A stretch of DNA of 41,059 nt from Octopus bimaculoides (taxonomy: Eukaryota). Below the pieces are notes generated by a model. It searched no databases and had not been told where the DNA came from. It worked only from the letters and a program-made list of their open reading frames with translations. Positions within the stretch are counted from its first letter, which is position 1. Each line of letters starts with the position of its first letter. The translations under genes and the position numbers were made by a program. The stretch is taken from NCBI RefSeq assembly GCF_001194135.2, contig NC_068983.1, positions 46,122,229 through 46,163,287 of the forward strand. Direction: 5' to 3'. Of this stretch, positions 71 through 41,059 are shown piece after piece.

Positions 71-165
71 GTGTAGACGTATTTCTTGACATGCCTTACA
101 TGTGTTTGATAAGAATTTAAATGGAATACATATAACATTATACATTTCTTGATTTTCTCTGAAAG

Positions 166-378
166 GTAAACATGTAGTAATAAATGGTGCTTCACTTCAT
201 CACTGCGAAGATACTCAGACAATTCTAAACGTAAAGAATCCAGAAGACTGCCAAGAGACATGCTCGCGAAAAGGATGCTTCGGAACAATGTTTCTTAAGT
301 CAAAGAAAGTATGCAAAATGGTGATGTCTCTCAAGTATTATTTTCGGTTTATTGGTAACGAGGATAGTTATTTTGCTG
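166..378 (+). CDS. Second PAN/apple-like exon (213 bp) on the opposite strand, paralogous to 6560-6775
   Basis: KHVVINGASLHHCEDTQTILNVKNPEDCQETCSRKGCFGTMFLKSKKVCKMVMSLKYYFRFIGNEDSYFA. It shares INGAS and all five Cys at identical spacing with the minus-strand exon. Acceptor TTTTCTCTGAAAG, donor GTATGT, phase 1-1. Not in the ORF track. Confidence 0.8.
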
Positions 379-414
379 GTATGTATTTTGTGTTTCCTGT
401 TAATAAACATTCGT

Positions 415-558
415 GTGAATGGCAGTGTGGTTAAGAAGCCCGCTTTGTAACCACATGATTTCGCGCAGCACCATGACCGTGTGTCTGCTCCAATCACTCT
501 CGACTGACCAATACTTCATGAGTAAATTTGGTGTGTGAAAACTGTGTGGAAGTTCGTC

Positions 559-21753: not shown

Positions 21754-23800
21754 GTGATGGTGATGGTGATGGTGATGGTGATTATGAGGAAGAGGAGCAA
21801 GAGCAGGAGCAGCAGCAGTGGAGGAGGAAGAGGAGGACCAGGAAGAGGAGGACCAGGAACAGGACCTTTTGGGTAAATACTGCTGAATATCACAATATTG
21901 TTGAAGATGTGATTTAATAAGACGTCTTTATCGCATTAGGCATCATATGAAAATTAACCCCTTTAAAATAACACAGCAAAAATAGAATTATAGAATTATA
22001 GAATTATAGCAGAATGTGTTAGGCTTACCTTGTTGGCAAAAACGTCCAAAATAGTTTGCAGTGCACTGACAAGTGTAGTGGAAAGCCTTATTAATACAAG
22101 TTCCTCCGTTCTTACACGGACTGTTTTGGCACGGATTAACTAGGAAATATAAATATTTCTTAATGTGAAAAGAATTTATAAATTTTAAGAGAACATGAAA
22201 TAATACCTTTTTTTTTTAAATACTGGATCTCAAATCAGACAAACTATAAAGAATAACATGTATCCAAAGAGTTGTTAAACCAATATTACACGCTGCTTCT
22301 TATAGCTTTGTCTGCTCCGAGCTTTGCCATTCAAAAGAAAATAGAATTATATAAATTTATATTAAAATATTAGAATTATAGTACGTTTGTGCTTTCGAGA
22401 TCTACGTAAATATTGCAATCATTATGTATTTTAGAGCTATCTGCAATGAGTGACAAAAACACAGTCATGGTATAACGGTCTTTTGTCAGAGTTAATTCTT
22501 CAATAACTATATCTGTTTAGCTAGAGGTCAATCCTGACCAAGCTAACATATAATCAAAGGCTTTCCAGTCGCGACCACATCATCTTTTTAAAGATATCTA
22601 GGACAGTAACATCTAATGTATCTTTTGAATTTTAAAGGTGGTTGGTCTTGATTTCTAGCAACTGGGTCATTATCGGCTATATACAGTCGCTCTATAAGGA
22701 ATACGCTATTTTTTTTTTTTTAATCGTAGGTCATTTATCTAAAACTGAATCACAATACGAACTATCTTTCTCATTTACATAGATGTATGAAAGAAACTGT
22801 TTTAATGCTTACCAGAACACATATTTGTTACCAGGGCGGTTTTTATTGAGATAAGTGAATCATAGCCGTCCACAGTGAAGAGACCACCTGAATCTGGTCG
22901 ACTAGAAATTGTTTTCAGTTCTGCAACGGAAACGTTATTTCCGATTCCCAACACAAGAACATTTATTCCATTTTGTTTCAGTAGTGCAGCTGCACGTGAC
23001 GTATACGCCGGTAGTTTTGATTTACTTCCAATTATTGGAATAACACTACGAGATGTTTTGGGACGACTTCCGAAGTTGTGATTGAAGACCTTTGCTCTAA
23101 TATAATTCAACCCTACATGAAACAAAGGTTTTCCCTTAGAATACGTTATATTCTGTAATGCCTTCATGAGTGTTTCTAAATTTCCACCGTCTTTCAAGGA
23201 AATATGATTATTAGCAACTGTGCTGGTTGTAATGAGTCCAATTCTCATAGATTCCAGCTGAATATTAAAGGATTGTATAAGATTCTTCACAAACTGTTTA
23301 ATTTTTATAAAGTTTTCCTCTCCAATGCTTTCAGAATCGTCGATCATAAACGCAAGATCAATTGGTTTATTACACACTGAAACAGAAATAAATACGTAAT
23401 AAAACATCTTAGTTTTCGGTTTTTAGATACATTTCGCGGATGCTCTGGGGTGCATCATCAATGGTGTTTCTAGGGTTCCAGAAAATGCACGTATATTTTA
23501 GTAAAAGTTACGTAATAAATTTCTCCTGAAAAACATCTCATCCTACAAGAATCAAAATCCTCTATAAAATATCAGAATCAAGTGGTTAATAAATGAATAA
23601 ATGAATAAATATATTCATTACGTGTCACAGATATATATATACATATATATGCATATATATATGCATACATATATATACATATGTATATATACATGCATAT
23701 ATAAATATATATACATACATATATATACACACAAACATATATGTACATACATATATATACACATACATATATGTACATACATATATATATATACATATGT

Positions 23801-25527: not shown

Positions 25528-28500
25528 ATATATATATATATATATANNNNNNNNNNNNNNNNNNNNNNNNNNNNNNNNNNNNNNNNNNNNNNNNNNNNNN
25601 NNNNNNNNNNNNNNNNNNNNNNNNNNNNNNNNNNNNNNNNNNNNNNNNNNNNGGATCGAAATTTCGGCCAGGTCATCTGTGCCTCTCATTCTTATAGAGT
25701 CGATAATACAAGTGCTACTTGAAGACTGGACTCCATTTAATCAAATTACCACCTCACCTGAAATTAGTGGGCTTCGACAAAAATTTCAATCCTGTTATTA
25801 CAATTATACTTGAAAACAACGAAGAACAAATTATTTGCCTAAAATTACCAGTTAAGTGAAAATGCATTAATAATAATTATAAAAACTTTACTCACCAGTG
25901 TGAACACATTTTCCGTTATGAAGAATGAAATTTTCATTACAAACACATGCATGTCTCCGTCTTTGAATTCCGCAATGGCTGCTTTCACCACAAGGAGCGA
26001 TATTTTCTGTTACTATTTCGTTACCAGGTTTACATATTTTCTTCGTTTTACAATCTGCTGATATAATTTCCTCATTAACCTGTAGGTAAAATTCAATAAA
26101 TTACAACCATATTATACCAGTGTATATTTATGGATAGAACATTTGATGAAACTTTAAAATATTCCAGCAGAATATTGATGGTGTTTCTAAGAGTGAAGCT
26201 GAAAACCTCATTTTATCACGTATGATAATTCATTACAATACGCTGTCATTGATATTCCTAGGTAAATTTCTAGTAGCGGAACACAGAGAGCTTTTATATG
26301 AGGAAAGTATACGTCGTGAACAGATGATCGGTTCCAAAGTTAACATCAACAAAAATGTCCAGCAATCTATTTAATAACGAGTTAGCTATCTATATCTTTT
26401 GTGCCTAATGGTGTTATTATACAGCCCAAATGTATGTCGGTGTGTATGTACATTTGTATGTGTGTGTCTGTCTGTCTGTGTGTGTATATGTGTGTGCGCG
26501 CGTGTATGGTATACATGTTTATCTATGTATACAAACTTGTATATAGTACTTTACCTTCATATATATCTTGTTGTCGCTACAACCGCATTCTGATNNNNNN
26601 NNNNNNNNNNNNNNNNNNNNNNNNNNNNNNNNNNNNNNNNNNNNNNNNNNNNNNNNNNNNNNNNNNNNNNNNNNNNNNNNNNNNNNNNNNNNNNTGCCAG
26701 AGTAAATTGTCATAGTGATAACTACGGAAATTTGCAGAAAGAGTATGGGCCGCACAGAAATGTACGAGTGGTCCAGACGTTTCCAAAATATCCGAAAAAT
26801 TGTCGATGTTCACGAACGTTCTGGAAGACCGACAACCAGCAGAACTGAGGAAAACATCGCAATTGTGCGTGAAGCTGTGAAGAATAAACGTCGAATCTCC
26901 ATCTGTAAGCGATCAGAGGATATGCAGATTAGTTACGGCTCAGTTCAGTCCATTACTACAGATGATTTGATCATGAGAAGCGTTTCTGCCAAGTTAGTGC
27001 TCAAACTGTGTACAACTGACCAAAAATACANNNNNNNNNNNNNNNNNNNNNNNNNNNNNNNNNNNNNNNNNNNNNNNNNNNNNNNNNNNNNNNNNNNNNN
27101 NNNNNNNNNNNNNNNNNNNNNNNNNNNNNNNNNNNNNNNNNNNNNNNNNNNNNNNNNNNNNNNNNNNNNNNNNNNNNNNNNNNNNNNNNGTTATATACCT
27201 CGGTCACCCGCTAAACATTTTCTTTCCAAGCACTGCTATAGAAGGCGAAAGTGAGCTACAACGTCAATACTTCGAGAGCATGCACAGTAGACATCACGCT
27301 GAGATCAAGCTCAATCTGTACACAATGGCTTCATTCTACGTGTTTTCGCTTCGTTACTATATCAAAGGTCCGGATACTGACTGATCAGACCTCGAAAGTG
27401 TTTGCTTCAAGTTATGAATCACTGTCATCTAAAAGCACAAACTCGATTCCTACAGTCGAACAATGCATCTGATGGATTCACCAATTACAAAATTATAATC
27501 TCTCAAAGAACTGAAATGTAATTCGACTAAATTTCATCTCGGATACATCAAGATGTAATGCGCCATTTATCCTGTTCTTTGAGGAATGTAAGGAATCGGT
27601 ATATCTTACGGCATCGTGATTTTTCTCTCCAGTTAACGAAAATCCCCAAACTTTCGCATTCTGAAGCAAAACCTTCAATGATTCGACAGAAAACAGAGTG
27701 AAGGTTGTTCAAATCGTTGTGATAAACACAGACATCGATTCTACAAGACTCCAAGTATTCTTCTAGACTCGAAGCTCCGATCTTTTCAATGCAGGCGTCA
27801 AAGATTTTGTCCTTCATAAAAACACATTCTTTTGTCTCTTCCTTTGTACAATTCGCATTAAGATCTCCCACATTGCATCTGAAAGTTAAAATAGAAAGCG
27901 GAATGATGAAGTTAAGAATTAATTGTTATGATGTACGATTTCTCATTTGCTAACTAGAAACAATGCGGATTTTCTGAGTAAAACTTACTGTTGAGTGGAT
28001 CAATTATGATTCACATCTCTCTACTTTCGTTAGCTTCTGATGTACAACAAAATTCCAGAAGTCAAATATTCCTTACATCTAAAACGTTACCAAATCATCT
28101 AAGATTGTTAACTCATTTCTTCCCTTATACATACAAGCACAAACACGAACATCATTCACCATATACAAGTAACACATGCGCNNNNNNNNNNACAAGCACA
28201 AACACGAACATCATTCACCATATACAAGTAACACATGCGCACATTCTTTGATCGTAGATCAGCTGGATCAGAACGATTCATTTCCTTTTTATTCTAGGCA
28301 CGAGGCTCGTAAATTTTGAGGATGGGGCCAGTCGATTAGATCGACCCAATTACGCAGCTAGTACATAATTTATCGACCCTAGAGGAATTTGAAAGAACAN
28401 NNNNNNNNNNNNNNNNNNNNNNNNNNNNNNNNNNNNNNNNNNNNNNNNNNNNNNNNNNNNNNNNNNNNNNNNNNNNAATCTGACGTTTGAGAGGATGGAG

Positions 28501-31500
28501 TCAGTCGGTTCCAACTTGATTGCTACTTACTTTATCGAGAAGGATGAATACCAAAGACGGCGTCGTCGACATTTCAACGCAGAACGCAAAGATCAAACAG
28601 AAATAATTCTAAGCATTTTGGTGTGTGAGGCAACGGAAACTATTTTTATTTAAGGCTGTATTTTTATTTAAGTTTATCTTTATGGAGGCTAATCGATAAC
28701 ATCGACCTAGTATTTGACTGGCAATATTATCGACTACGAACTCGGAATGTAAGGAACCCAAGGAATCGCCGCAAATCATTTTTGCCACGCTCTAAACATT
28801 CTGCCAGCTCACAGATTAACGTGAAATCTTGATATTAAAACATTTAAAATACTATCAACAATTTACATAATATTTATTCTTGATTTTGGAGTTTGAGAAA
28901 GAAAATAGTCATTACTTTGTTTCTGGTTTATCACTGTCATCTGTAACTTGATAACTGGCACCAATTAAAGAAAATTTATCTGGTTTCTGAGAAACATCTT
29001 CACCAGANNNNNNNNNNNNNNNNNNNNNNNNNNNNNNNNNNNNNNNNNNNNNNNNNNNNNNNNNNNNNNNNNNNNNNNNNTCAATTGATCGGCAAATATT
29101 GGTGGTAATGTAACAGTGACTCTGTGTCTACCATCAAACATGACCTTCAAACCCCACATAGTGGTAACTGTAATCCACCCGACAGAGTATGTGGCTGAAA
29201 ACTCTCTATAATTTCTTACAGGTAAGGATTTCTCTACTGAATTTATCTGAAAATTAAATTCAAGAAAATAGGACAGGCGTGCAAATCAAGTAATATTTCT
29301 TTATACATAAATNNNNNNNNNNNNNNNNNNNNNNNNNNNNNNNNNNNNNNNNNNNNNNNNNNNNNNNNNNNNNNNNNNNNNNNNNNNNNNNNNNNNNNNN
29401 NNNNNNNNNNNNGAAAATAGGACAGGCGTGCAAATCAAGTAATATTTCTTTATACATAAATCATGGATTATTTTTAATATTTTACTTGTTTCAGTCATTG
29501 GACTTTGGCCATGCTGCAGCACCACCTTCAAGAGATTACTCGGGCAAGTCTTCCGACGTACATCTTTTATTTTATATCCAGTACTTACCCTATCGCCTCC
29601 TTTTACCGAACCGTTAAGTTACGTAGACGTAAACAAATCTCACCAGTATATATATATATCACTGCTACATTACATTTTGCTCTTTTTATAATTTGGCCAC
29701 CTTAGAATATACTTAAGAGCATGGAAATCATAATTCAATTGACACGCCTTCGCTCCTTTCATTAAAAAATATAACATCAACATCTTCTGAAAGCCGAATA
29801 TCTATGAATTACCCACACTGTCTTCTGGAAACGACGACTATTGGTAATATGATGCTCTTTTGTCAGCTAGTGATGTGCTTACATACCACATGCTGAAAAA
29901 CAGTTTGTTAGCATCTCACCGATTGAAGAGGATCTCTTATGTTCATTTGTTTGGCAACCGCTAAAATCCGTTATTAATCATATTGTAATAACCGTGATTA
30001 ATTCCACATTTTATCAATGATTTTATATCTATTTTAATACGTAAATATGTTCAGTATTATGTTATTGATTCGATACGTCAAATATTACAATTACGTCTTT
30101 GATTTAGTTCCATATTCAATTTTTTCCTAAGTCTACGATTTAAATTTGTTTCCTTGCATTATATCTTCGTTTCGTTTCTTGGTTACAATTATTAGAAGCG
30201 TGACATTCGAAAATACAACTTCACCTGCAGAATGAAATTATGGTTGGTTATTACACATTTACATAACTATAGAGTGAAGAGAGACAAAATGTACGTACCA
30301 AGATTTTGTTAGCTGGCAACAGACGAATTGTGTAACCAGTGAGTTTGACATCCACTAAACGTGTGTAAGATACACGGTCATTTCCTCGGTGTTCGTTCTT
30401 TACTTCAACAGAAAAGTCGGTATTGTTCGATCCGTTCTTATTAGTAGCCAGTGTATATTTGCATGTCCCCATGAAATGTATCATTTGTCCATCGAACGTT
30501 CTATAGTGAGGGTCACCAGACGCTTCACATCTACAGGGCCGCAGAACTGGAGAAAGAAACCAATGGAGACTTATAGCACAGACAATGGCGCATAAAACTG
30601 ACCACAGTTGTTCATTTTATTGACTTCTAGGATATGAAAAGCGTAGATGATTCGGAAGGAGATTTAATGCTCTGAGGACACAAAGGGACATAACTTAAAA
30701 CCATAAATTTTTTATCCCACTCAGTATTTGCTGCTCTATGTCTAGTGCTACACATTTAAGATAAGTGCAGAGATAATTCCGTGGATCCTGTCTGTGGTTG
30801 AGACTTTATTTAATCCACGACATAATAAAGAAAGGCAATATTTACTCTACTCGTATTTGGTTTCAGCATGGAGACAGCAACTAAATGCAGCATGAAGTCG
30901 GGCGTTCTACCAATTCTGCCATCCACTGCCCGATTAGATATGGCATTGAGTCTTTATATTTATATAGCTTCAAAGCAGATTTGAATAATTTGAACTAAAT
31001 TCAAATAGCCGTAACTGCTAACTCAATTCATTTTGTCTCGCGTTTTATCTATCCCAGCTTCCAGCGCCTTTTATGTTAAGTTTATATAAATACTTACCAC
31101 TGCATGCTTTAGTTGAGAATGTCGATGATATACTCTGTAAGACAGCAAAACTATTCACTGAAAATACGTATTTCGAACTCGGCTCGCTACCAATTGCTTT
31201 GAGTTCGGTATTCGAAATCTTTTTCCCGACTCCAATTGCGAATATAATAGTTCCACTCTTTTTGAGCTTTTCGGCTGCTTTTACTGTCCAGACTTGATTA
31301 TTTGAGTTTCCGTCTGTGATGACAACTGCAATATTCAATACATCTTTTCGGTCACCAGATATTGCACTGAAGGAAGAATCTTTAAGGTAATTTAAAGCGG
31401 CATAGGTGTGTGTCCAGCCTCCGGTGTGACCTATTCTGTCAATCGCTGCGTTTATTTCGAGGATATTTCTGTATTTATTCATATTAAATTGGTTCTTTAC

Positions 31501-33291
31501 AGCGGTGCTAAATGTGATAATACCAACTTGGACAGCATTTGACGATATTGGAAAAGATGAGACAAGTTTCTTGACAAAATGTTTCATCAATAGAAATTCA
31601 TCCTTAGAAATGCTTCCAGAGTCGTCTAATACAAACATGATATCTGCTACAGCATTTCCACACTCTGAAACTAAAGTGAAATAAAAAATGTATTACAATA
31701 GTAATATATATTTACATGAATGTTTAAGTCGGCGTGATAACAGAATCGTTAGCATGCCAGGCGAAATTCTTAGCGGCGGTTCGTCCGTCTTTACGTTCTC
31801 AGCTCGAATTACATCAAGGTCGACATTGCTTTTTATCCTTTCGGAATGGGTAAAATAAGTACCAGTTGAACACTGGAATCAATTTAATCGACTTATCCCC
31901 CTCCCCAAAAATTGTTGGCGCTGTGCCAAAATTTAGAACCAATATACTTGGTCGAGTGTGCATGTGGGAGGCTAAATATTCCGGTACACCCCTATATATA
32001 TAGTCTAGGTAAATGCATCTGATGAAGACTGATCAAATTTACGTTGACAAACGTATTTGAAGAGTCAGAAACCGGTCCTGCATTATCCGATTCTGCGTTG
32101 TCCATTTATCGAATGTCCTTCCTAGAGGTAAGACAAATTTTTCGTGTTTGTTGCACTCACACGTCCTTGCCAGTATATACGCAGTGAAGCTTTACAATAG
32201 CGTCATATTTGTATCTTAGATAAATTGTAGATATGTTTCGACCAAAGATTGGTCCAGGCCATGTCTAACTTAGTAGCACCACCTGATACGATTATCTAAA
32301 TCCTTTTTACAGTCAAGTTTTGTCTATGGTCCATTCAAGTAGTGAGTTCTTATTGAGTGAGCTGTATCCAGGTATGGGTGGCTTGTCTGGTATTCTTTGA
32401 AGAAAGCTGTCCAGACTCCGTTTAAAGCTGATAAGATCCTTTTCCTCTTTTATCTGTTTCGGGACAATGTTAAACAGGGCAGGGCCTGTTGAGGTAAAGA
32501 AATTATGCCGCAATGTACCTATATGTCGTGATTCTGAATTGGGCAGAGGACGTATGGCTCGTGGTCCCAGGCTTGGATGAACCTTGAAACTAATTTTCAG
32601 GTCGTTTGGGCAATGCTGGCGGTATATTTTCCACATCGTACAAATGATGTACCGCTCGCGGCGGCGCTGGAGAGAGCAGAGCTTCAAGGCTTTAAGGCAG
32701 TCCCAGTAATCAAGATCAATCATGCCTTTAATTCATTTGGTGAGTGCCCTCTGGGATGATTCAATCCTCGAGATGTTTTGTTTTGTATGGGAAGACAACA
32801 AGGGGCAGCAGTATTCGAGGTGTGGTCGTACAAAGGAGAAAAGTGGAATGATGACACCTTGTTTTTTGGACCGGAAGTTTCTTAAGATCCAGGAGCTCAT
32901 CCTACGAGCTATATCGACCTTATTTTTTATGTGGACACTCCAATTGAGGTTGTTGTCAACAATTACACCCAGATCTCTGGTATTGTTGGATGCCGTGAGC
33001 GGTTCCCCTGAAGGAAGACGGTATGGCAATTTTAGTATGGACTTTCTTCCAAAATGCCTCTGCTCAAATTTTCCCTCGTTCAGTTTCATTTTGTTTTTAT
33101 CTGCCCATTGACTCACAGCATATAGATCAGTCTGGAGTTGGGTTCGGTCTTCTTCATTGATGATTTGCTGGAGCTTAGTGTCATCAGTAAATATTTTCAC
33201 TTTGCAGTGATTTACGACGCTGGAAAGGTCATTTATATAAATCGGCTGCTATTTCCAGTAAATATTGGTGCTTTGTTGTAACACTCATCTG

Positions 33292-33795: not shown

Positions 33796-34323
33796 NNNNN
33801 NNNNNNNNNNNNNNNNNNNNNNNNNNNNNNNNNNNNNNNNNNNNNNNNNNNNNNNNNNNNNNNNNNNNNNNNNNNNNNNNNNNNNNNNNNNNNNNNNNNN
33901 NNNNNNNNNNNNNNNNNNNNNNNNNNNNNNNNNNNNNNNNNNNNNNNNNNNNNNNNNNNNNNNNAAAATGAATATACTGTTCATAATTTTGCATAATTTT
34001 TCATAATTTTACATGACCCTCGTTTTCATCCTTTTCATAGGCAGAAAATAATGGTATGATTCAAGGACAACAATACTCAAACCAGAAACTCCCCTAATCC
34101 CAAGGAATATCCTAAGAGGATCTATTTTAAGGGCTGTCTAATCAGGGTGTGGGGGAAAATAGCAAAGTCCCCCGTCACAATGGAGAATATCCAGCCTGTT
34201 AGGATGTACTATTCCGAAAGTCCACCAAGGCACTCTACTGTGAATATTACTCGGCAACGACGGGATACTCAGTTAATGTGTGTGTGTGTGTGTGTGGATA
34301 GAGAGAGAGAGAGAGAAATAGAA

Positions 34324-34355
<32 letters not shown>

Positions 34356-34823
34356 GGATAGAAAGAGAGAAAGAGAGAAAGAGGGGGAATTTTGTGGAAT
34401 AACATGCAAACTTTCTCCTAAGGTCCTAACCAAGCCAGTCAACCAATCGCGCCTTTCTCAATATGTAAACATGAACAACCTACGTTAGCTTTAAATATAC
34501 TTGTAAAACAAAATCTATGGCAAAACTATGCCTATAAATTATGGGGACTTTTAATGTTATACTTACGTATGTTACAGTCTCTTCCAGTGTAACCAGGTCG
34601 GCAGTTACAAGTAAATGTATGTCCTTTCCTGATACATTCGCCGCCGTTCTTACATGGTTTCGTATAGCATGGGTTGACTAGTGTATAAAAGAAATAGAAG
34701 CTGTATTTCACAATCACATCTTTATTTACAACGGAATATAGAAGAATTCGTTTTAAAATTTCTCTTTACTTCTCTAATTATTTTCTCTCCTATTCTCCCT
34801 CAATTGTAGCAAGAAAAATTGAT

Positions 34824-34893
<70 letters not shown>

Positions 34894-37558
34894 CCATCAT
34901 CAAGATGCCTTAAATGATGTAGCCAATCATTGGAGTGCCACTAAAGACACTTTTATTTTCAGCCATCGCCATTTTCAGCCATCTATATATATAGAAAAAA
35001 ATTAAGGTACTCAGAAATCTGGATGTTTGTACATTTACAGATTTTTATTAATGTCACATATTAAATAAAGCGCTTTTCACCTAGTCGTGTAGGATTTTCA
35101 NNNNNNNNNNNNNNNNNNNNNNNNNNNNNNNNNNNNNNNNNNNNNNNNNNNNNNNNNNNNNNNNNNNNNNNNNNNNNNNNNNNNNNNNNNNNNNNNNNNN
35201 NNNNNNNNNNNNNNNNNNNNNNNNNNNNNNNNNNNNNNNNNNNNNNNNNNNNNNNNNNNNNNNNNNNNNNNNNNNNNNNNNNNNNNNNNNNNNNNNNNNN
35301 NNNNNNNNNNNNNNNNNNNNNNNNNNNNNNNNNNNNNNNNNNNNNNNNNNNNNNNNNNNNNNNNNNNNNNNNNNNNNNNNNNNNNNNNNNNNNNNNNNNN
35401 NNNNNNNNNNNNNNNNNNNNNNNNNNNNNNNNNNNNNNNNNNNNNNNNNNNNNNNNNNNNNNNNNNNNNNNNNNNNNNNNNNNNNNNNNNNNNNNNNNNN
35501 NNNNNNNNNNNNNNNNNNNNNNNNNNNNNNNNNNNNNNNNNNNNNNNNNNNNNNNNNNNNNNNNNNNNNNNNNNNNNNNNNNNNNNNNNNNNNNNNNNNN
35601 NNNNNNNNNNNNNNNNNNNNNNNNNNNNNNNNNNNNNNNNNNNNNNNNNNNNNNNNNNNNNNNNNNNNNNNNNNNNNNNNNNNNNNNNNNNNNNNNNNNN
35701 NNNNNNNNNNNNNNNNNNNNNNNNNNNNNNNNNNNNNNNNNNNNNNNNNNNNNNNNNNNNNNNNNNNNNNNNNNNNNNNNNNNNNNNNNNNNNNNNNNNN
35801 NNNNNNNNNNNNNNNNNNNNNNNNNNNNNNNNNNNNNNNNNNNNNNNNNNNNNNNNNNNNNNNNNNNNNNNNNNNNNNNNNNNNNNNNNNNNNNNNNNNN
35901 NNNNNNNNNNNNNNNNNNNGTGTGTGTGTTGTATACATATGCATTGGTAGCGTGAATGACGTTACAATGAGTCTCGTTAAAAACATCATCATGCTGCTAT
36001 TTTCTGCACCTAAGAAGGATGAAAATGAGAGTTTTGTAAAATTATGAAATGAATATATTTTACATAATTTTACACGATTCATTTTCACCATTTTCAGATG
36101 CAGTGTCAACAAAATTAAAACCAACAGCTCCCCTAATCCCACGAAATGTCCCAAAGGGATCTATTATTTTCAGGGCTGCCAAATTTGGTCCCCACTCACA
36201 CCTTATTCTTACTGCCTTCTAAACTAAATACAAGTTATTGGCGACCTAATCGAGCAATAAATAATTTCATACCATGAACTCCTAGTGAGTATCCAAAGGA
36301 ATTTCAATTTCTGAAGGGCCGCTTAAATGGGTTCCCACTGACACCCACAACTTTTGTGGGTGGGGAGTTTGGAATGGAGCATCGGATAATTAATACCAAG
36401 AAATACATACACAATGAACGTGTCCGAGACCTTTACAGTACAGAAGGTTATAAGGCCCCAAAGCTACACGATAGTGCCGCCTGCAGGGGTAGCCAGAAGG
36501 ACGCCGCATGGGCAGCTTCAGGGCTACTAATGTTATACTTACATATAGTACAGCATATTCCAGAGTAACCAGGTCTGCATGTACAAAAGTATCTACGTTT
36601 TCTCCTGACACATGTGGCGCGGTTCTTAGATGGTCTCCTGAGACATGGATTTACCACTGAATAAAAAAAATAAAAACTTTATTCCACAGTCTTCTATATC
36701 TTTATATGGATACTCAGTTAATGCATATATGTGTATATATGCATGTATATTAAAGAAAGAGGAAGAGACAGTGGGAGGGGGTTCTTTATGTGAAATAACA
36801 TGCAAAGTTTATCCCAAGATATTTCCATTAACAAAGTCATTCAACCAATCAGCTTTCTTAATATGTATTCATGAGGAAACTACCTTGGCTCTTTAAAATA
36901 TACTTGTAAAGCAAAATCTATGATAAATCTATACTTATAGTTTATGGCTATTTTTAATGTTATACTTACATCTATTACAATATCTTCCAGAGTAACCAGG
37001 TTTGCATTTACAGGTGAATCTACGTCCTTTCCTGATACATGTGCCGCCGTTCTTACATGGTCTCCTGCGACATGGATTTACCACTGTATAAAAGAAATAA
37101 AAACCTTATTCCACAGTCTTCTATATATTTATATGGATATAACAATAGAATATCTTTTAACGAAGGCTCTATTTACAGTTATACTTATTGTTTATCTCTA
37201 TTTATTTATATATTTTATTTGCCTTAATCTTTCTGAGTTAGAACATGAACAATTATTGGATTTTTAAAATAATAATTCGCTATAATATCAAAAAGTAAAT
37301 CATAAAATTTTATCCAAAATTAGCTACCGTGAAACAAGCAAAAATCCGGATTTCGCAATTTTACCAACATTGCTGGGACGACTATGTATACATATATGTT
37401 TATGTATGCATGTGTGTGCGCGCACTCTCTGTATATATGTGTGTGTGAGTGTGTTCGTGTGTGTGTGCTCGTGTGTGTATGCGCGTGCGCGCATATATAT
37501 GAATATGGATAGACAGATAGAAAGATAGAAAGATAGACAGACAGACAAACAGGTAGAC

Positions 37559-37621
<63 letters not shown>

Positions 37622-40600
37622 GACGAAAAATTTCGGTTTCAAATAAAGTCCAAATAATCCCCAAACCAAAGCATGGAAAATTATTGGATTTTTCAAATAA
37701 TTTGCTATAATATGAAAAAGGAAAGCATAAAATTTTATCCAAAATTAGCTACCGAGAAACAAGCAAAAATCAGGATTTCGCAATTTTACCAACATTGCTG
37801 GAACGTTTCCTCAGCTATTGATGCTCTTCTGTGGCTTTTAGCTCTATACAACTCTAGGAAAAGCTTATTCAAGAAGAGATTCTGCAGTTTNNNNNNNNNN
37901 NNNNNNNNNNNNNNNNNNNNNNNNNNNNNNNNNNNNNNNNNNNNNNNNNNNNNNNNNNNNNNNNNNNNNNNNNNNNNNNNNNNNNNNNNNNNNNNNNNNN
38001 NNNNNNNNNNNNNNNNNNNNNNNNNNNNNNNNNNNNNNNNNNNNNNNNNNNNNNNNNNNNNNNNNNNNNNNNNNNNNNNNNNNNNNNNNNNNNNNNNNNN
38101 NNNNNNNNNNNNNNNNNNNNNNNNNNNNNNNNNNNNNNNNNNNNNNNNNNNNNNNNNNNNNNNNNNNNNNNNNNNNNNNNNNNNNNNNNNNNNNNNNNNN
38201 NNNNNNNNNNNNNNNNNNNNNNNNNNNNNNNNNNNNNNNNNNNNNNNNNNNNNNNNNNNNNNNNNNNNNNNNNNNNNNNNNNNNNNNNNNNNNNNNNNNN
38301 NNNNNNNNNNNNNNNNNNNNNNNNNNNNNNNNNNNNNNNNNNNNNNNNNNNNNNNNNNNNNNNNNNNNNNNNNNNNNNNNNNNNNNNNNNNNNNNNNNNN
38401 NNNNNNNNNNNNNNNNNNNNNNNNNNNNNNNNNNNNNNNNNNNNNNNNNNNNNNNNNNNNNNNNNNNNNNNNNNNNNNNNNNNNNNNNNNNNNNNNNNNN
38501 NNNNNNNNNNNNNNNNNNNNNNNNNNNNNNNNNNNNNNNNNNNNNNNNNNNNNNNNNNNNNNNNNNNNNNNNNNNNNNNNNNNNNNNNNNNNNNNNNNNN
38601 NNNNNNNNNNNNNNNNNNNNNNNNNNNNNNNNNNNNNNNNNNNNNNNNNNNNNNNNNNNNNNNNNNNNNNNNNNNNNNNNNNNNNNNNNNNNNNNNNNNN
38701 NNNNNNNNNNNNNNNNNNNNNNNNNNGTAGCGATTTTCTTCACTACTTCAGGGAGTGACAACCCTGCCTGATACGAGTCCCGTAGGCGGTTTAGTGTTCT
38801 ACTCGACTCTTTCCCGGCAGCTCCTGCAACCAAACTGGTGGCAAACGTAATGCTCTGCACTCCTGTAGACTACATCAACAAGGTTGAGAGAGGAATCCTG
38901 ACGATTGAGCTACCCAGGATTCATCCTGCTTCAAAAAATCGGATGTTCACCAAAGCTGCTGAGGATCATCAAATCTTTCCATGATGATATGTAAGGCACC
39001 ATACAGCACAATGGTTCAACATCAGGCGCCTTCCAAATAAAGAACGGGGTAAAGCAAGGCTGTGTCCTTGCTCCTACATTATTTGGCATCTTCTTCTCGC
39101 TACTGCTGTCACATGCTTTTGAAACATCAGATGATGGAGTGTTTCTGCACGGTAGAAGTGACGGGAAACTGTTCAATCTCTCGCGTCTGCGTGCCAAGTC
39201 CAAAATCAGAAGCGTCCTGATCAAGGAGATGCTCTTCGTTGCTGCTGCTGCTCTGGTATCACACTCAGAAGAAGCCCTGCAAAGGCTCATCAACTGCTTT
39301 GAGCAAGCATATAGCGACTTTGGCTTAGTTATCAGCCTCAAGAAGACCAACATCATGGGTCAGGCTACATCGGACATCCCAAACATACATATTGGAGACT
39401 ACAAACTACAGGAGGTGAAGAGGTTTACCTATCTTGGCTCTACCGTCACCTACAACCTATCCCTTGATGCTGAGCTCAATATACGCATTGGCAAAGCAGC
39501 TGCTGTGATGGCTCAACTCTCCAAATGGACATGGGACAACAAGCTGACCAAGACCACAAAAATTAAGATTTACCAGGCATGTGTACTTAGCACTCTGCTG
39601 TATGGCAGTGAGACCTGGACGCCATACACACGCCAAGAGCGTCGCCTAAATATCTTTCACCTGCGCTACCTCCAGAAAATCCTTGGCATCAAATGGCAGG
39701 ATCGTGTCCCCAACAAAGATGTCCTCAAGCAAGCAGGAATACCAAGCATGTTTGCACTCCTCACACAAAGACGTATGAGATGGCTTGGACATGTTAGTCG
39801 TATGGAAGATGGCAGAATCCCCAAGGACATACTCTACGGAGAGCTTCCTAGGGGCACTAGGTCTGTGGGAAGACCGTTCATACGATACAAGGATGTTTGC
39901 AAAAGGGACATGAAGGCCTGTGACATCAATATTAGCAGCTGGGAAGCGGTTGCCAGCAACCGTGGAGTTTGGCGACGCATCATAGAAGATGGAACATAAA
40001 GGAGTGACAGAGGGAGAGAGGAGAAATGAAAAGACAAGAAAAGACGTCAACAAGAAACTATGACATTACAACCAGCCAGGCAAAGTCTTCGCTACATTTG
40101 TGGCCCCTGCCCGAGGGAGCGTTTGTCCCGGATAGGACTAGACAGCCACAGTAGGAAATGTATTAGGACATGGATCGTAAAAACCTAACTAGATTATTTT
40201 ATGCGCAACTTCATTTCTCCCTAGACAAAACGATGCCCAAACAATCCCCAAACCAAAGCCGGGGTACTTTCATACACCTTGTTTTCAGTAAAGCAACTTC
40301 CGTCCTATGAATGTAAAACATTCATAGATCCTTTAATACATTTCTAAAAAAAGACCTTGCGATTATTTTTTGTGTTATACTTACACGCACGACGGTACCG
40401 TCCGATATAACCCCGTCGGCATTTACAGATGAATCTACGTCCTCTTCTGATACATGCGCTGCCGTTTTTACAAGGTCTATTATAGCATGGATTGGCTTGT
40501 GTATAAAAGAAATAAAAGTTGTATTTCACAATCTTATGTATATTTACAAAGAAATAATGGAAGAATTCCATTTTACAAATTTCCTGTCTACTGCTTTTCG

Positions 40601-41059
40601 TAAATTATCAAAATCTATTTCTATAGAAAAAGAGCCACTCCTTTATAAGTGCCTACTACAAAAAAAATTGACAAAGAATCTGTCCGAAAATTGAGAGCGG
40701 AAATGAAAAAATTTTCAAAAGATTTTCCACGGAAAAGCTCCCCTGATCATCATTAGCAAAGGTGTAAGAAAGAAAAAGTAAAAGGTCCCCGTCGCAATTA
40801 AGGAAATCCAACCTCTTTAGGTGTACAATTCTAAAAGTCCGCCAATTCACACTATTGTCAACCACGTGATACTCAGTTAATGCATGTATGTGTATATATA
40901 CATGTATATTCATAGCTCTTTTAATGCATTTCTAAAAAAGATCTTAGGATTATTTTTTGTGTTATACTTACACGTACGACAGTATCGTCCAATATAACCA
41001 CGTCGGCATTTACAGGTGAATCTACGTCCCTTTTTGATACATGCACCACCGTTTTTGCA
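6560..41059 (-). CDS. Multi-exon gene (5'-partial, 3' end uncertain) for a secreted mosaic protein: EGF(n>=5)-[VWA-VWD-C8-TIL-Cys-rich]x2-PAN; FCGBP/zonadhesin/mucin-like
   Basis: 18 exons found by hand, with GT donors and AG acceptors wherever the boundary is inside called sequence. Intron phases chain without frameshift or stop (1-1 for EGFs and VWA, 1-0 and 0-2 for VWD, 2-1 for C8, 1-0 for TIL, 0-1 for the Cys-rich exon, 1-1 for PAN). Motifs seen: DxSxS, GDPH, C8 'SCRIDVC...WR...C', TIL 'EGCIC.PGY'. Confidence 0.88.
7063..7509. mobile_element. Long inverted-repeat (hairpin) element, MITE-like, TA-flanked
   Basis: Arms 7063-7262 and 7313-7509 are reverse complements over ~200 bp with scattered mismatches (e.g. 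TTCCAGCCACGAGAACACCAGACCGTAC versus GTACGGTCTGGTGGTCTCGTGGCTGGAA); ~50-nt spacer. Confidence 0.85.
7768..8146 (-). mobile_element. Microsatellite-containing tRNA-headed SINE, near full-length copy
   Basis: On the minus strand: head (GTGTGGTAAGTAGCTTGC...GGGTTCAGTCCC), body (CTTGGGCAAG...AAGAAGCCCGTCG), (TA/TG)n, then tail (...CGACTAAAGGCGGTGCTCCAG...GACTGAAACAAGTAAAAG). Confidence 0.8.
9690..9890 (-). mobile_element. SINE family A copy (another partial copy at ~9560-9665)
   Basis: Conserved family A blocks in reverse orientation. Confidence 0.65.
10363..10570 (+). mobile_element. SINE family A copy
   Basis: GCTAGCAGAATCGTTAGCACG...TTTACGTTCTGGGTTCAAATGCCGCCGAGGTC...GTCGATTAAATAAGTACCAG. Confidence 0.7.
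11291..11580. mobile_element. piggyBac-type MITE (290 bp) with TTAA target-site duplication
   Basis: TTAA|CCCATTACCTCCCA...TGGTAGGTAATGGG|TTAA (TTAA at 11287-11290 and 11581-11584); terminal inverted repeats start with CCC. Confidence 0.75.
11728..11908 (-). CDS. Cys-rich (TILa/EGF-like) exon 2 (181 bp): [16 protein letters not shown]...PCQENSHC...[18 protein letters not shown]
   Basis: Acceptor CAATATTTAG, donor GTAAGT, phase 0-1; paralogous to 25896-26079. Not in the ORF track. Confidence 0.88.
12050..13287 (+). mobile_element. Degraded Penelope-like retroelement fragment bounded by 129-bp direct repeats (12050-12178 and 13159-13287)
   Basis: The direct repeats are near-identical. The internal ORF 12745-13095 (VYQI...PLNVRMKEH...KHL..H...LQIKEA) resembles a decayed GIY-YIG endonuclease C-terminus. 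Confidence 0.55.
13738..13928 (-). CDS. TIL domain 2 exon (191 bp)
   Basis: [63 protein letters not shown]; acceptor TTTGATATTCAG, donor GTAAGT, phase 1-0. Confidence 0.9.
14008..14110 (+). mobile_element. SINE head (tRNA-derived, same family as 7981-8146)
   Basis: GTGTGGTAAGAAGCTTGCTTTCCAACCAC...GAGTTCAATCCCACTG...TTGGGCAAG. Confidence 0.7.
14320..14836 (+). mobile_element. 3' fragment of an RTE-clade LINE with (AAG)n tail
   Basis: KIRLLRA...ATYGCESWT...YHRILRV*W...[34 protein letters not shown]...WQDIV; several stops; AGAAGAAGAAGAAG tail. Confidence 0.85.
15222..15362 (-). mobile_element. Diverged SINE head/body (same family as 7981-8146)
   Basis: AGAAAAGGACATTTTCTCAAGATGCCG...GGGATCGAACCC aligns to the family body. 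Confidence 0.45.
15634..15905 (-). CDS. C8 domain 2 exon (272 bp)
   Basis: [10 protein letters not shown]...[14 protein letters not shown]...[10 protein letters not shown]...[27 protein letters not shown]; acceptor TTTTGCTTCAG, donor GTAAGT, phase 2-1. Not in the ORF track. Confidence 0.9.
15995..16362 (+). mobile_element. tRNA-derived SINE (distinct family), near full-length
   Basis: A-box-like TGGCCCAGTGG and B-box-like GGTTTCGATTCCC at tRNA spacing, followed by ~290 bp of non-tRNA body; no complete cloverleaf. Confidence 0.75.
16671..16830 (-). mobile_element. SINE head/body (same family as 7981-8146) abutting (TA)n and an N gap
   Basis: Near-identical to 7981-8146. Confidence 0.8.
17093..17400 (-). 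CDS. VWD domain 2, second exon (308 bp)
   Basis: [10 protein letters not shown]...[27 protein letters not shown]...[14 protein letters not shown]...[11 protein letters not shown]; acceptor TTCCTTTTAG, donor GTAAGG, phase 0-2. Confidence 0.92.
17744..17778 (+). ncRNA. Minimal hammerhead-ribozyme-like motif (degenerate stem I)
   Basis: CTGAAGA (17749-17755), A, stem GAGC-GTT-GCTC, GAAAC, GTA; palindromic ACGT stem III; only 3 bp (TTT/AAA) of stem I. Confidence 0.4.
18012..18259 (-). CDS. VWD domain 2, first exon (248 bp), contains GDPH
   Basis: [31 protein letters not shown]...VEVKNEHRS; acceptor TTATTTTTCAG, donor GTAATG, phase 1-0; same length as 30299-30546. Confidence 0.92.
18454..19996 (+). 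mobile_element. Non-autonomous Helitron-like element (spans N gap 19200-19773)
   Basis: A|TC 5' end followed by TATATATAAAA and (GTCT)n; 3' hairpin ACCCGG-GCAAAT-CCGGGT (19968-19985) then CTAG|T; internal ~60-bp duplication (18731-18790 and 18859-18917). Continuity across the gap is assumed. Confidence 0.65.
20474..20885. mobile_element. Tail-to-tail inverted pair of SINE family A copies (20474-20673 plus, 20683-20885 minus)
   Basis: Family A blocks read inward from both ends, separated by ~10 nt. Confidence 0.65.
21175..21400. repeat. Degenerate ~15-bp minisatellite (GTGAGACAGCGTGGCA-like)
   Basis: Repeated GAGACAGCGTGG / GTGTGACAGT units. Confidence 0.85.
21712..21866. repeat. Compound trinucleotide repeat: (GAT)n to (GGTGAT)n to GAG/AGC/GGA
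   Basis: Directly visible. Confidence 0.9.
22813..23376 (-). CDS. VWA domain 2 exon (564 bp), degenerate MIDAS
   Basis: [18 protein letters not shown]...RIGLITTS...VLVLGIG...ELKTISS...NMCS; acceptor TTTCTGTTTCAG, donor GTAAGC, phase 1-1. Confidence 0.92.
24990..25208 (-). mobile_element. tRNA-headed SINE (third family)
   Basis: The minus strand begins GCGTGGCTTAGTGGTTAAGGTGTTAGCC...GATTTCGATTCCTGG (A/B boxes), then TTGTGTTCTTGAGTAAAACACTT. Confidence 0.7.
25275..25450 (-). mobile_element. Tail portion of the microsatellite-containing SINE (similar partial copies at 24775-24870 and 29480-29645)
   Basis: TTTGACTGCGGCCATGCTGGAGCACC...TTTAGTCGAGCAAATCG...CCGAACCGCT...GGTTGTCAAG matches 7768-7960. 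Confidence 0.75.
25896..26079 (-). CDS. Cys-rich (TILa/EGF-like) exon 1 (184 bp): [19 protein letters not shown]...PCGESSHC...[18 protein letters not shown]
   Basis: Acceptor TTTTACCTACAG, donor GTGAGT, phase 0-1; seven Cys aligned with exon 11728-11908. Not in the ORF track. Confidence 0.88.
26555..26594 (-). CDS. 3' remnant of TIL domain 1 exon (the rest is in N gap 26595-26694)
   Basis: Reads [13 protein letters not shown] then a phase-0 GTAAAG donor, matching [13 protein letters not shown]|GTAAGT of the paralogous TIL exon at 13738-13928. Confidence 0.8.
26695..27030 (+). mobile_element. Mariner (Mos1-like) transposase N-terminal remnant
   Basis: [10 protein letters not shown]...[26 protein letters not shown]...RRISI...ISYGSVQSI...MRSVSAKLV is the typical mariner HTH region; flanked by N gaps. 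Confidence 0.85.
27610..27878 (-). CDS. C8 domain 1 exon (269 bp)
   Basis: [10 protein letters not shown]...[13 protein letters not shown]...[10 protein letters not shown]...[27 protein letters not shown]; acceptor TTTAACTTTCAG, donor GTAAGA, phase 2-1. Confidence 0.92.
28916..29246 (-). CDS. VWD domain 1, second exon (interrupted by N gap 29008-29080)
   Basis: [13 protein letters not shown]...[34 protein letters not shown]-[gap][30 protein letters not shown]. Collinear with the paralogous exon 17093-17400, which implies the true gap is ~50 nt rather than 73. Phase 0-2. Confidence 0.88.
30299..30546 (-). CDS. VWD domain 1, first exon (248 bp), contains GDPH
   Basis: [32 protein letters not shown]...VEVKNEHRG; acceptor TTTCTTTCTCCAG, donor GTACGT, phase 1-0. 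Confidence 0.92.
31098..31664 (-). CDS. VWA domain 1 exon (567 bp), intact MIDAS
   Basis: [18 protein letters not shown]...[10 protein letters not shown]...AVVITDGNS...IFAIGVG...KACS; acceptor TTTAGTTTCAG, donor GTAAGT, phase 1-1. Confidence 0.93.
31728..31945 (+). mobile_element. SINE family A copy
   Basis: CAGAATCGTTAGCATGCC...TTCTTAGCGG...TTTACGTTCT...AAAATAAGTACCAG...CCCCCTCCCC. Confidence 0.7.
32012..32084 (+). ncRNA. Type I minimal hammerhead ribozyme-like motif (Penelope-associated type)
   Basis: AATGCAT-CTGATGA-A-GACT...AGTC-A-GAAAC-CG-GTC-CTGCATT. Intact CUGAUGA (32019-32025) and GAAA (32068-32071); palindromic ACCGGT stem III; GUC triplet; AATGCA/TGCATT stem I; TACGTT-GACA-AACGTA hairpin inside stem II. 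Confidence 0.6.
32305..33245 (-). mobile_element. 5'-truncated CR1/L2-like LINE: reverse transcriptase C-terminal region
   Basis: IYINDL...KIFTDDTKL...[20 protein letters not shown]...[17 protein letters not shown]...[11 protein letters not shown]...then [16 protein letters not shown] in a second frame (frameshift near 32730). Confidence 0.88.
33466..33682. mobile_element. Mariner-type MITE (TA-flanked); partial second copy at ~20010-20105
   Basis: Left end TATGAGAGGATGCTGAAAAGTT versus reverse complement of the right end TACAAGGGGTTGCTGGAAAGTT; GAATAAAATCATAATTAACTGATCC is shared with 20020-20050. Confidence 0.65.
34567..34677 (-). CDS. EGF-like exon E (111 bp): [36 protein letters not shown]
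   Basis: Acceptor TTTTATACACTAG, donor GTAAGT, phase 1-1; six canonical Cys. Confidence 0.9.
36543..36656 (-). CDS. EGF-like exon D (114 bp): [37 protein letters not shown]; Cys2 lost, extra Cys before Cys6
   Basis: Acceptor TTTTTTATTCAG, donor GTAAGT, phase 1-1. Confidence 0.78.
36970..37083 (-). CDS. EGF-like exon C (114 bp): [37 protein letters not shown]
   Basis: Acceptor TTTCTTTTATACAG, donor GTAAGT, phase 1-1; six canonical Cys. Not in the supplied ORF track. Confidence 0.9.
37251..37805. repeat. ~130-bp direct duplication (37251-37380 and 37679-37805) separated by compound microsatellites including (AGAT)n
   Basis: AATTATTGGATTTT...ATAAAATTTTATCCAAAATTAGCTACCG.GAAACAAGCAAAAATC.GGATTTCGCAATTTTACCAACATTGCTGG occurs twice. 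Confidence 0.9.
38935..40237 (+). mobile_element. 5'-truncated RTE-clade LINE (reverse transcriptase plus C-terminal Cys/His motif), inactivated
   Basis: [19 protein letters not shown]...[18 protein letters not shown]...LFVAAAAL (expected LFADDAAL)...FTYLGS...LLYGSETWT...[26 protein letters not shown]...YICGPC...[12 protein letters not shown]; 3' end ...GATGCC. Confidence 0.92.
40385..40495 (-). CDS. EGF-like exon B (111 bp): [36 protein letters not shown]; sixth Cys replaced by Arg
   Basis: Acceptor TTTTATACACAAG, donor GTAAGT, phase 1-1; CGT where sibling exons have TGT. Confidence 0.78.
40972..41059 (-). CDS. EGF-like exon A (partial, runs off the window): [29 protein letters not shown]
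   Basis: EGF Cys spacing; phase-1 GTAAGT donor at 40971-40966; homologous to the four EGF exons downstream. Confidence 0.88.

Follow-up and report, generated by a model that had tools for sequence, protein, structure and literature searches.

The right-hand end of a 41,059-nt stretch of the Octopus bimaculoides genome (contig NC_068983.1, positions 46,122,229 to 46,163,287; the whole stretch is called the window below) carries five short exons for strongly basic EGF modules, next to exons for VWA and VWD domains. The locus raises the question of whether these exons are working parts of one protein, and what a protein with such an arm would do. An earlier note, made from the letters alone, had described an expanding array duplicated with its introns and had proposed a polycationic arm of tunable length. 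We consider it fairly probable that the five exons are genuine, separately spliced cassettes, which would form the cationic EGF rod of a secreted, multimerising mucus or matrix protein that binds polyanions.

All five exons are on the minus strand. In the direction of transcription, they are E_e (40972-41059), E_d (40385-40495, 111 nt), E_c (36970-37083, 114 nt), E_b (36543-36656, 114 nt), and E_a (34567-34677, 111 nt), the last EGF exon before the first VWA exon (VWA1). For E_e only the 3' 88 nt are visible, the rest being cut off by the window edge and an assembly gap. The complete exons are phase 1-1, with two bases of a split codon at the start, one at the end, and a length that is a multiple of three. 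The donor is GTAAGTAT in all five, and the acceptor is AG preceded by a pyrimidine-rich tract in every visible case; the acceptor of E_e lies beyond the window edge. The junction codons derived from these sites (Leu, Phe, Leu) match the RefSeq protein. A single module per exon between two phase 1 introns is the class 1-1 arrangement of exon shuffling. All five exons match the Pfam EGF family (PF00008) at 26.5-41.8 bits, with E_c at 41.8 and E_e at 29.4 bits, against a gathering cut-off of 21.5. The five phase 1-1 exons of 111-114 bp claimed in the earlier note were thus borne out by splice sites, phases, and Pfam matches.

The six-cysteine spacing of an EGF module (C1-C3, C2-C4, C5-C6) is present in E_a, E_c, and the visible part of E_e. 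The other two exons depart from it, a feature that is absent from the earlier note: E_b has Ser at Cys2 and an additional Cys beside Cys6 (GICC), and in E_d Cys6 is replaced by Arg (GRYRRA). The calcium-binding EGF consensus (N-terminal D/N-x-D/N-E/Q-x-C) was not found in these modules, which begin with (L/F)(V)NPC, and no EGF_CA match was listed. A single-sequence AlphaFold2 model of E_c-E_b-E_a had a mean pLDDT (predicted local distance difference test score) of 70.5 and consisted of three beta-hairpin units; it matched the tandem EGFs of Notch in Foldseek with an E value of 1e-7.

What sets these modules apart is their charge. The counts of Lys plus Arg against Asp plus Glu are 6/2 in E_a, 10/0 in E_b, 12/0 in E_c, 12/0 in E_d, and 10/0 in E_e, exactly as claimed before, so that the cationic modules carry about one positive charge per three residues. 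The isoelectric point is 8.9 for E_a and 10.2-11.2 for the cationic copies, with 2-3 Tyr per module. As a background, 3,956 EGF-like domains from other multi-EGF proteins were retrieved and their charge was counted from Cys1 to Cys6. The net charge of E_c over this interval, +11, exceeded that of all 3,956 (range -8 to +10, centre -1 to 0), and the background values of +8 or more all came from an octopus paralog or from one soft-coral protein. Across 19 copies from O. bimaculoides and Octopus sinensis, ten alignment positions are at least 68% basic, with Lys and Arg interchanging, and only three acidic residues occur in total. Since the positions stay basic while the residues swap freely, the pattern fits selection on charge. 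Literature searches for basic or arginine-rich EGF repeats returned nothing relevant, and no paper on such arrays was found; querying the literature by accession or LOC number was equally negative.

A near-neutral EGF exon with 3 basic and 0 acidic residues lies at 21991-22215 (minus strand), between VWA2 and VWD2. It has the NPC..PCKNGG.C core common to the cationic copies and illustrates an uncharged relative. Separately, all copies of the EGF exon have another open frame, which reads as an acidic repeat (36883-37077, 34483-34677, 36393-36650, and 40325-40525, all on the minus strand). Isoforms X1-X3 of the O. sinensis paralog LOC115209189 begin with 6-8 repeats in this acidic second frame (MHLIHAIADLARTVAYVLEEDGASAVNADLDIADDTV), probably an annotation artefact from a missing 5' exon.

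The exons were duplicated together with their introns. The three intron homologies cited in the earlier note are real (76%, 89%, and about 70% in blastn). On the minus strand, the flank downstream of E_a (34360-34566) aligned with that downstream of E_c (36754-36969) at 75.7% identity over 218 nt (E 4e-39), and the flank downstream of E_d (40320-40384) aligned with that downstream of E_e (40908-40971) at 89.2% over 65 nt. The third homology, 34164-34289 with 40781-40893, reached about 70% over 126 nt. At 69-89% identity, these three do not speak for especially recent duplication, which had been part of the claim; nevertheless, the B-type units described below are 93-99% identical, introns included, whereas introns of the two Octopus species agree at only about 80-84%; part of the amplification is recent.

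Further copies beyond the window had been suspected, and they were found. The wider locus L001 (CM046603.1:46141316-46171317), which matches the window base for base and has the same gaps, contains five more copies (c1-c5) upstream of the window edge, and a degenerate copy lies farther upstream, in L004. In all, the array comprises at least ten duplicated EGF exons, and those in the window are its 3' half. The copies fall into a subtype A (...PGYSGRYCN), with c1 and E_c as members and E_b and E_a as diverged relatives, and a subtype B, made up of c2-c5, E_e, and E_d. In a repeat search, the start-to-start spacing was 811 nt from A to B and 657-660 nt from B to B; Tandem Repeats Finder, with a maximum period of only 500 nt, reported no tandem repeat in the array. 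Growth of the array is attributed to unequal crossing-over of exon-plus-intron units of 0.43-0.81 kb.

The number of units must be read with the gaps in mind, and copy number and spacing cannot be fixed from the assembly because the chromosome-scale version carries identical gaps. The window, which is low in GC and rich in gaps, holds an 819-N gap at 35101-35919, in the intron between E_b and E_a, and an 836-N gap at 37891-38726, in the intron upstream of E_c, and its right edge (41059) adjoins a 1959-N gap. Neither of the two gaps inside the array is spanned by any exon, and since each exon is self-contained with its own splice sites, frame continuity across them is no issue. The earlier note had considered that the gaps might hide copies. 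For 37891-38726 this may hold, whereas 35101-35919 probably contains no EGF exon, judging from synteny: the matching interval of the gap-free O. sinensis locus has none. On both sides of a 2.2-kb upstream gap there are blocks of 99% identity (L001 1105-1338 and 2537-2770; 1434-1733 and 4980-5279), which shows that there is a higher-order repeat and that the assembler broke exactly at near-identical units. Should these contigs adjoin in repeat phase, the actual gap might measure about 95 nt, enlarged by some integer multiple of a 1.43-kb higher-order unit. Because multiples of such a unit are possible, the gap sizes within the array are not informative.

We also asked whether the array could be an artefact, in which a fragmented assembly of short reads had turned one or two exons into many. 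The region does contain four gaps, the 99% identical blocks flank the upstream one, E_e equals c5 over 112 nt, and the chromosome-scale assembly re-scaffolds the same contigs. However, the copies differ at many exon and intron sites, and E_e and c5 diverge downstream of the identical stretch and must therefore be distinct copies. Moreover, an independent, gap-free contig of O. sinensis has nine copies, and paralogs of three species have similar arrays. We give this explanation almost no credence.

The ortholog in O. sinensis was reached by ranking the results of a profile search, whose top places went to long multi-EGF proteins, by per-domain net charge, which led to the paralog XP_014776970.1 and from there to XP_036355134.1 (LOC115229549). 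The latter is colinear with the RefSeq product of the window, at 84% identity over 440 aa, and VWA1 is 89% identical to that of LOC115229549. A word-indexed protein search with VWA1 as the query returned the window's own product alone; it missed this ortholog and is not evidence of absence. The same kind of search with the concatenated array returned generic Notch and fibropellin matches at 26-42% identity and likewise missed the 84-89% identical ortholog. The architecture of the ortholog is signal peptide-WSC-EGF(7)-VWA-VWD-C8-TIL-EGF-like, and its seven EGFs have net charges of +6 to +13. The O. sinensis locus (L003), which is gap-free, contains nine EGF exons in the order A-B-A-B-A-B-A-Eb-Ea, all nine with AG/GTAAGTAT splice sites. 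The RefSeq model omits two of the nine and keeps the frame. Because O. sinensis has no B-B tandem units, the B expansion is placed in the O. bimaculoides lineage, where the subtype was tandem-amplified after the split of the two species.

The unusual cysteine patterns have counterparts in the second species as well. The E_b pattern (no Cys2, GICC) recurs in O. sinensis copy s8, and the Cys6-to-Arg change of E_d recurs in the B-type copy s2. Given these counterparts, the E_b and E_d types of variant are old or recurrent and do not represent fresh decay. A reading of E_b as a freshly decayed pseudo-exon, suggested by its ratio of non-synonymous to synonymous rates (dN/dS) above 1, was rejected for the same reason, the cysteine pattern being common to O. 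sinensis. The counterpart of E_a is s9, with 82% nucleotide identity, a dN of 0.15, and a dS of 0.42.

A comparison of dN/dS among the copies had been proposed in the earlier note as a check, and pairwise values in O. bimaculoides were mostly 0.1-0.3. Three independent contrasts, when pooled, gave 17 synonymous against 11 non-synonymous differences (Fisher p = 4e-6). Between the species, the proportion of synonymous differences (pS) over five counterpart pairs was 0.225, compared with 0.092 for non-synonymous ones (pN; p = 2.8e-4). The A and B exons are 87-95% identical between the species, the VWA exon 94%, and the introns approximately 80-84%. These data show purifying selection on the array exons. 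Constraint is lowest for E_a and E_b, whose dN/dS values against their O. sinensis counterparts are 0.36 and 0.67.

The selection data also bear on a different explanation, namely that the copies upstream of E_c, including E_d and E_e, are mostly unused pseudo-exons, that a unit of about 0.66 kb with an old EGF exon in it was amplified neutrally in the manner of a satellite, and that the mRNA has only the three exons on the VWA1 side. In agreement with this, RefSeq has only E_c, E_b, and E_a, and the upstream 10 kb are without a called gene. Furthermore, c4 has a TT donor, E_d has lost Cys6, the exons of the youngest B copies are no more alike than their introns, and the O. sinensis model skips two of nine copies. 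Nevertheless, the differences among B copies are mainly synonymous (6 against 2 for c2-c3 and 3 against 0 for c2-c4), in line with the pooled test above. Splice sites are perfect in 9/9 O. sinensis copies, and donors are intact in 9/10 O. bimaculoides copies. The B-type exons are 89-91% identical between the species, compared with approximately 80-84% for the introns, and the O. sinensis RefSeq protein includes B-type exons. The truncation of the O. bimaculoides model coincides with a transposon and gaps. Unused upstream copies are, on balance, unlikely, and cassettes that are genuinely spliced account better for these observations.

The transcript model that contains the cassettes was examined further. 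In the RefSeq models of both species the EGF exons share a transcript with the VWA and VWD exons: in O. bimaculoides, XP_052822701.1 ('cartilage matrix protein-like, partial') joins E_c-E_b-E_a to them. The array is received by VWA1 (31098-31670, minus strand; 573 nt, phase 1-1), which has a DxSxS motif of the metal-ion-dependent adhesion site type (DDSGS) and matches Pfam VWA with an E value of 1e-42. The exons of VWD1 follow within 29088-30546 (30299-30546 and 29088-29246, the second cut by a gap). The C8, TIL-tail, and EGF-like exons follow within 25891-27925, all on the minus strand, with C8 near 27877, the TIL tail at 26552-26593, and EGF-like near 26058. The first TIL exon is cut by a 100-N gap (26595-26694), and only its tail is visible. 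VWD, C8, and TIL are consecutive and in this order, as in a D assembly, with VWD and C8 seen in the window and all three in the ortholog. The whole minus-strand order is (EGF)n-VWA-VWD-C8-TIL (gap-cut)-EGF-like-VWA-EGF-VWD-C8-TIL-EGF-like-PAN.

The window may hold one long gene or two tandem genes. After VHTG, the last residues of the first EGF-like exon, comes GTGAGTAA, at once an in-frame stop and a consensus phase-1 donor (ACTG/GTGAGTAA; 25891-25935, minus strand). This overlap after ...KCVHTGE is conserved in O. sinensis, whose RefSeq model ends at the VHTGE stop, whereas the O. bimaculoides NCBI model splices on towards VWA2. The protein may continue into a second VWA-EGF-VWD-C8-TIL-EGF-PAN module. 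The claim that any subset of the array exons can be joined in frame agrees with the models: besides the O. sinensis model, which skips its two copies in frame, the isoforms of O. sinensis paralogs differ in length by exact multiples of 37 aa, as the skipping of cassette exons would give.

A secreted protein with VWA and a run of EGF modules whose number varies between members recalls the matrilins, the cartilage matrix protein family after which RefSeq names the gene. In matrilins an EGF module is a single phase 1-1 exon, and the number of modules varies also through splicing. In contrast, the octopus protein has WSC, VWD-C8-TIL, and possibly PAN domains, its EGFs are polycationic, and its array stands before the first VWA and not between two. 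No coiled-coil family, such as would correspond to the matrilin C terminus, gave a match in domain searches of the window or the ortholog, so the protein is not a matrilin.

Among solved structures, the closest to the VWD region are FCGBP and MUC5AC, and those closest to the VWA are collagen VI and a mussel thread matrix protein. The D assembly and the mucus context are thus shared with FCGBP and the gel-forming mucins. However, each module here has a single D assembly, and FCGBP lacks VWA, WSC, and an EGF array. No proline-threonine-serine (PTS) domain or cystine knot was seen in the ortholog or in the minus-strand open reading frames (ORFs) of the window that had passed a filter (at least two Cys, not low-complexity); this filter removes PTS sequence, and no targeted scan was made. 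On this basis the protein is not classed as a gel-forming mucin. Nor is it a homologue of the mussel plaque protein fp-2 beyond the common EGF fold.

The fp-2 resemblance had been put forward in the earlier note, and it did not hold beyond generic EGF similarity, since the protein also has WSC, VWA, and VWD-C8-TIL. The mussel EGF foot proteins Mgfp-2 and Pvfp-5beta (PDB 7QAB) do share tandem EGFs, a basic surface, and Tyr residues with the octopus array, and Pvfp-5beta has a module with two of its three disulfides (PMC9314366), as E_b and E_d would. However, they are almost wholly EGF, rich in Lys and in Tyr (as dihydroxyphenylalanine, DOPA), and located in the byssal plaque, whereas the octopus modules are Arg-rich and joined to WSC, VWA, and a D assembly. 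In this cephalopod protein the EGFs make up the N-terminal third only. The flatworm protein Mlig-ap1 and the sea-star protein Sfp1 are alike in having a carbohydrate-binding domain, VWD-C8-TIL, EGFs, and a high Cys content, and the extremely basic regions of Mlig-ap1 bind anionic glycans (PMC6410801). The likeness is at the level of domains only: the charge of Mlig-ap1 lies in separate low-complexity Lys/Arg regions, whereas here it lies inside folded EGFs. In function, the octopus protein would by analogy come closest to Mlig-ap1 and Sfp1, the cohesive proteins used in temporary adhesion, and to cross-linkers of mucus like FCGBP.

These likenesses could mean that the protein is a true glue, of the mussel fp-2/Pvfp-5 or the flatworm Mlig-ap1 type. 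The cationic, Tyr-containing array would then lend adhesion or cohesion to an attachment secretion, such as that of a sucker or egg stalk, and would not belong to the mucus in general. The tandem EGFs of basic isoelectric point with 2-3 Tyr each would suit a glue. Pvfp-5beta is a cationic two-EGF adhesive whose first module is without one disulfide (PMC9314366), and in Mlig-ap1 extremely basic regions with affinity for anionic sugars occur together with a lectin domain, VWD-C8-TIL, and EGFs (PMC6410801). The VWA, moreover, resembles mussel proximal thread matrix protein 1. Nevertheless, the sole protein-level evidence puts a near-identical copy of the ortholog in skin mucus, the modules are Arg-rich and not Lys/Tyr-rich, Pvfp-5beta was a weak Foldseek match (E 0.02, at rank 39), and proteins named fp-2-like gave only generic similarity of approximately 36-37% identity. 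We therefore regard a dedicated glue as quite unlikely.

The earlier note had also pointed to multibasic sites such as RRKRR. This motif occurs in E_b only, among its 10 Lys/Arg, and the O. sinensis counterpart reads RRGRK; it is not a conserved processing site. The observation bears on the idea that the product is a polyprotein precursor, cut at multibasic sites into free antimicrobial cationic EGF peptides. Apart from RRKRR itself, the very high charge density and the indicated skin-mucus context would be in keeping with such peptides. However, the motif lies in a single exon, between Cys3 and Cys4 and thus within the disulfide-bonded core. The sequences that link the modules (CNR-L-VNPC, CRT-F-NPC) do not form conserved dibasic sites, and the array continues in frame into large structural domains. 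Cleavage into free peptides is very unlikely.

The evidence for the favoured reading, a cationic EGF rod on a mucus or matrix protein, extends to the protein level in O. sinensis. A0A7E6ERF9 (LOC115209190) is 94% identical to the C-terminal 284 residues of the ortholog. In a published skin-mucus proteome, this near-identical O. sinensis copy was detected, and VWD, VWA, and C8 domains were enriched. We propose that the protein would be secreted into the skin mucus, where the D assembly, of the type that multimerises VWF, mucins, and FCGBP, and the VWA could build it into a mucus or matrix network. The disulfide-stiffened polycationic EGF rod would then bind polyanions electrostatically, for instance mucin glycans that are sulfated or sialylated, the envelopes of microbes, or fouling surfaces, and its reach and valency might be set by genomic copy number and in-frame exon skipping.

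Several points weigh against this reading. The peptides detected in mucus were matched to the C-terminal part of the O. sinensis copy and not to the EGF array, and they do not come from O. bimaculoides. The extremely basic regions of Mlig-ap1 are reported to escape tryptic proteomics (PMC6410801), and by analogy the Lys/Arg-dense array would be expected to give few usable tryptic peptides. Secretion of the full array, polyanion binding, and multimerisation are plausible, with the binding argued from charge alone. E_d, E_e, and the upstream copies are unannotated in RefSeq, whose model starts in a transposon; their inclusion in O. bimaculoides mRNA is putative, and the Gnomon models are predictions. 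Candidate exons for the signal peptide and WSC (L004 87311-92204) reach only 52-64% identity with their O. sinensis equivalents and lie across a 4.9-kb gap from the array; they may belong to another gene. The donor of c4 is TT, and E_d and E_b lack Cys6 and Cys2, respectively. The dN/dS of E_b, although 0.67 against s8, is 1.7-2.6 against c1 and E_c and thus exceeds 1 against its nearest paralogs. E_a, at 82% identity compared with 86-89% for its introns, is no better conserved than they are.

A wider proposal is more speculative, and we hold it only tentatively. The disulfide-stabilised polycationic EGF rods (+9 to +13 per 37 residues) might be a module for electrostatic binding in cephalopod skin mucus that has not been described before. 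They would bring anionic mucins together, by condensing or cross-linking them, and/or would act as a trap for microbes and foulants. Their valency would evolve fast by unequal crossing-over and be adjusted by cassette skipping, and the conserved Cys-deficient E_b and E_d types might provide unpaired thiols for covalent cross-links.

Relatives of the array show how the charge is distributed in the neighbourhood. The RefSeq models XP_052822698, 699, 701, and 702 belong to an octopod tandem cluster of EGF/VWA/VWD/C8/TIL(/PAN) genes. The upstream neighbour XP_052822702.1, which ends approximately 9 kb from L001, and XP_014774721.2 share the architecture with single-exon EGF arrays, although identity in the VWA and VWD domains amounts to only about 47%. 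In XP_052822702.1 there are 17 EGFs, all cationic at +5 to +10, some nearly identical to E_c. In contrast, XP_014774721.2 and its O. sinensis relatives have 21-27 neutral EGFs (-3 to +3), 27 being the number in one cluster member. A relative in Argonauta hians has moderately basic EGFs (+1 to +7). Outside the molluscs, Xenia sp. XP_046863735.1 ('Notch-like isoform X8') has seven tandem EGFs at +7 to +9; however, these are Lys-rich and flanked by unrelated Cys/Trp-rich domains in a cnidarian, and the likeness is presumably convergent. A second O. sinensis copy (P0388, with 11 EGFs over 106 kb) may be a chimeric model of two copies and was not counted as copy-number polymorphism. At the opposite end of the window, ORF 153-431 (plus strand) has a PAN/apple match (Pfam E 2e-4) on the strand opposite to the array gene and could be where a neighbouring paralog in convergent orientation ends.

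Transposon sequence lies at the starts of the truncated gene models. A non-LTR (long terminal repeat) retrotransposon fragment at 38727-39996 (plus strand; RVT_1 E 3e-8, ORF 38995-39996) lies antisense in the intron between E_d and E_c, is truncated by a gap, and has no counterpart at the O. sinensis locus. The start codon of XP_052822701.1 (39009-39089, minus strand) is artefactual, being on the antisense strand of this reverse transcriptase ORF. Retroelement fragments also occupy 32316-33248 (minus strand), in the intron between E_a and VWA1, and the older model UPI0006956E67 starts within one of them (32316-32732, minus strand). The true 5' end, with signal peptide and WSC, lies beyond the window. 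A further intronic ORF, 26706-27251 (plus strand), spans a gap (27031-27189) and by eye resembles the N-terminal part of a mariner/Tc1-type transposase.

For the annotation of this cluster, the consequence is that the RefSeq models at the locus are truncated and start inside transposons. For its biology, EGF modules rank with the commonest extracellular building blocks and are normally neutral or acidic, and here the folded scaffold has become a dense carrier of positive charge. In two adjacent genes of a cluster specific to octopuses, the cationic EGF was multiplied one exon at a time over a few million years, and in a sister gene it was a neutral array that grew. Should the arm indeed bind mucin glycans, microbes, or surfaces, it would represent a simple, modular design of tunable length, suited to wet adhesion or to mucus with antimicrobial action, a clear example of selection on charge and not on sequence, and a natural system for array expansion by unequal crossing-over.

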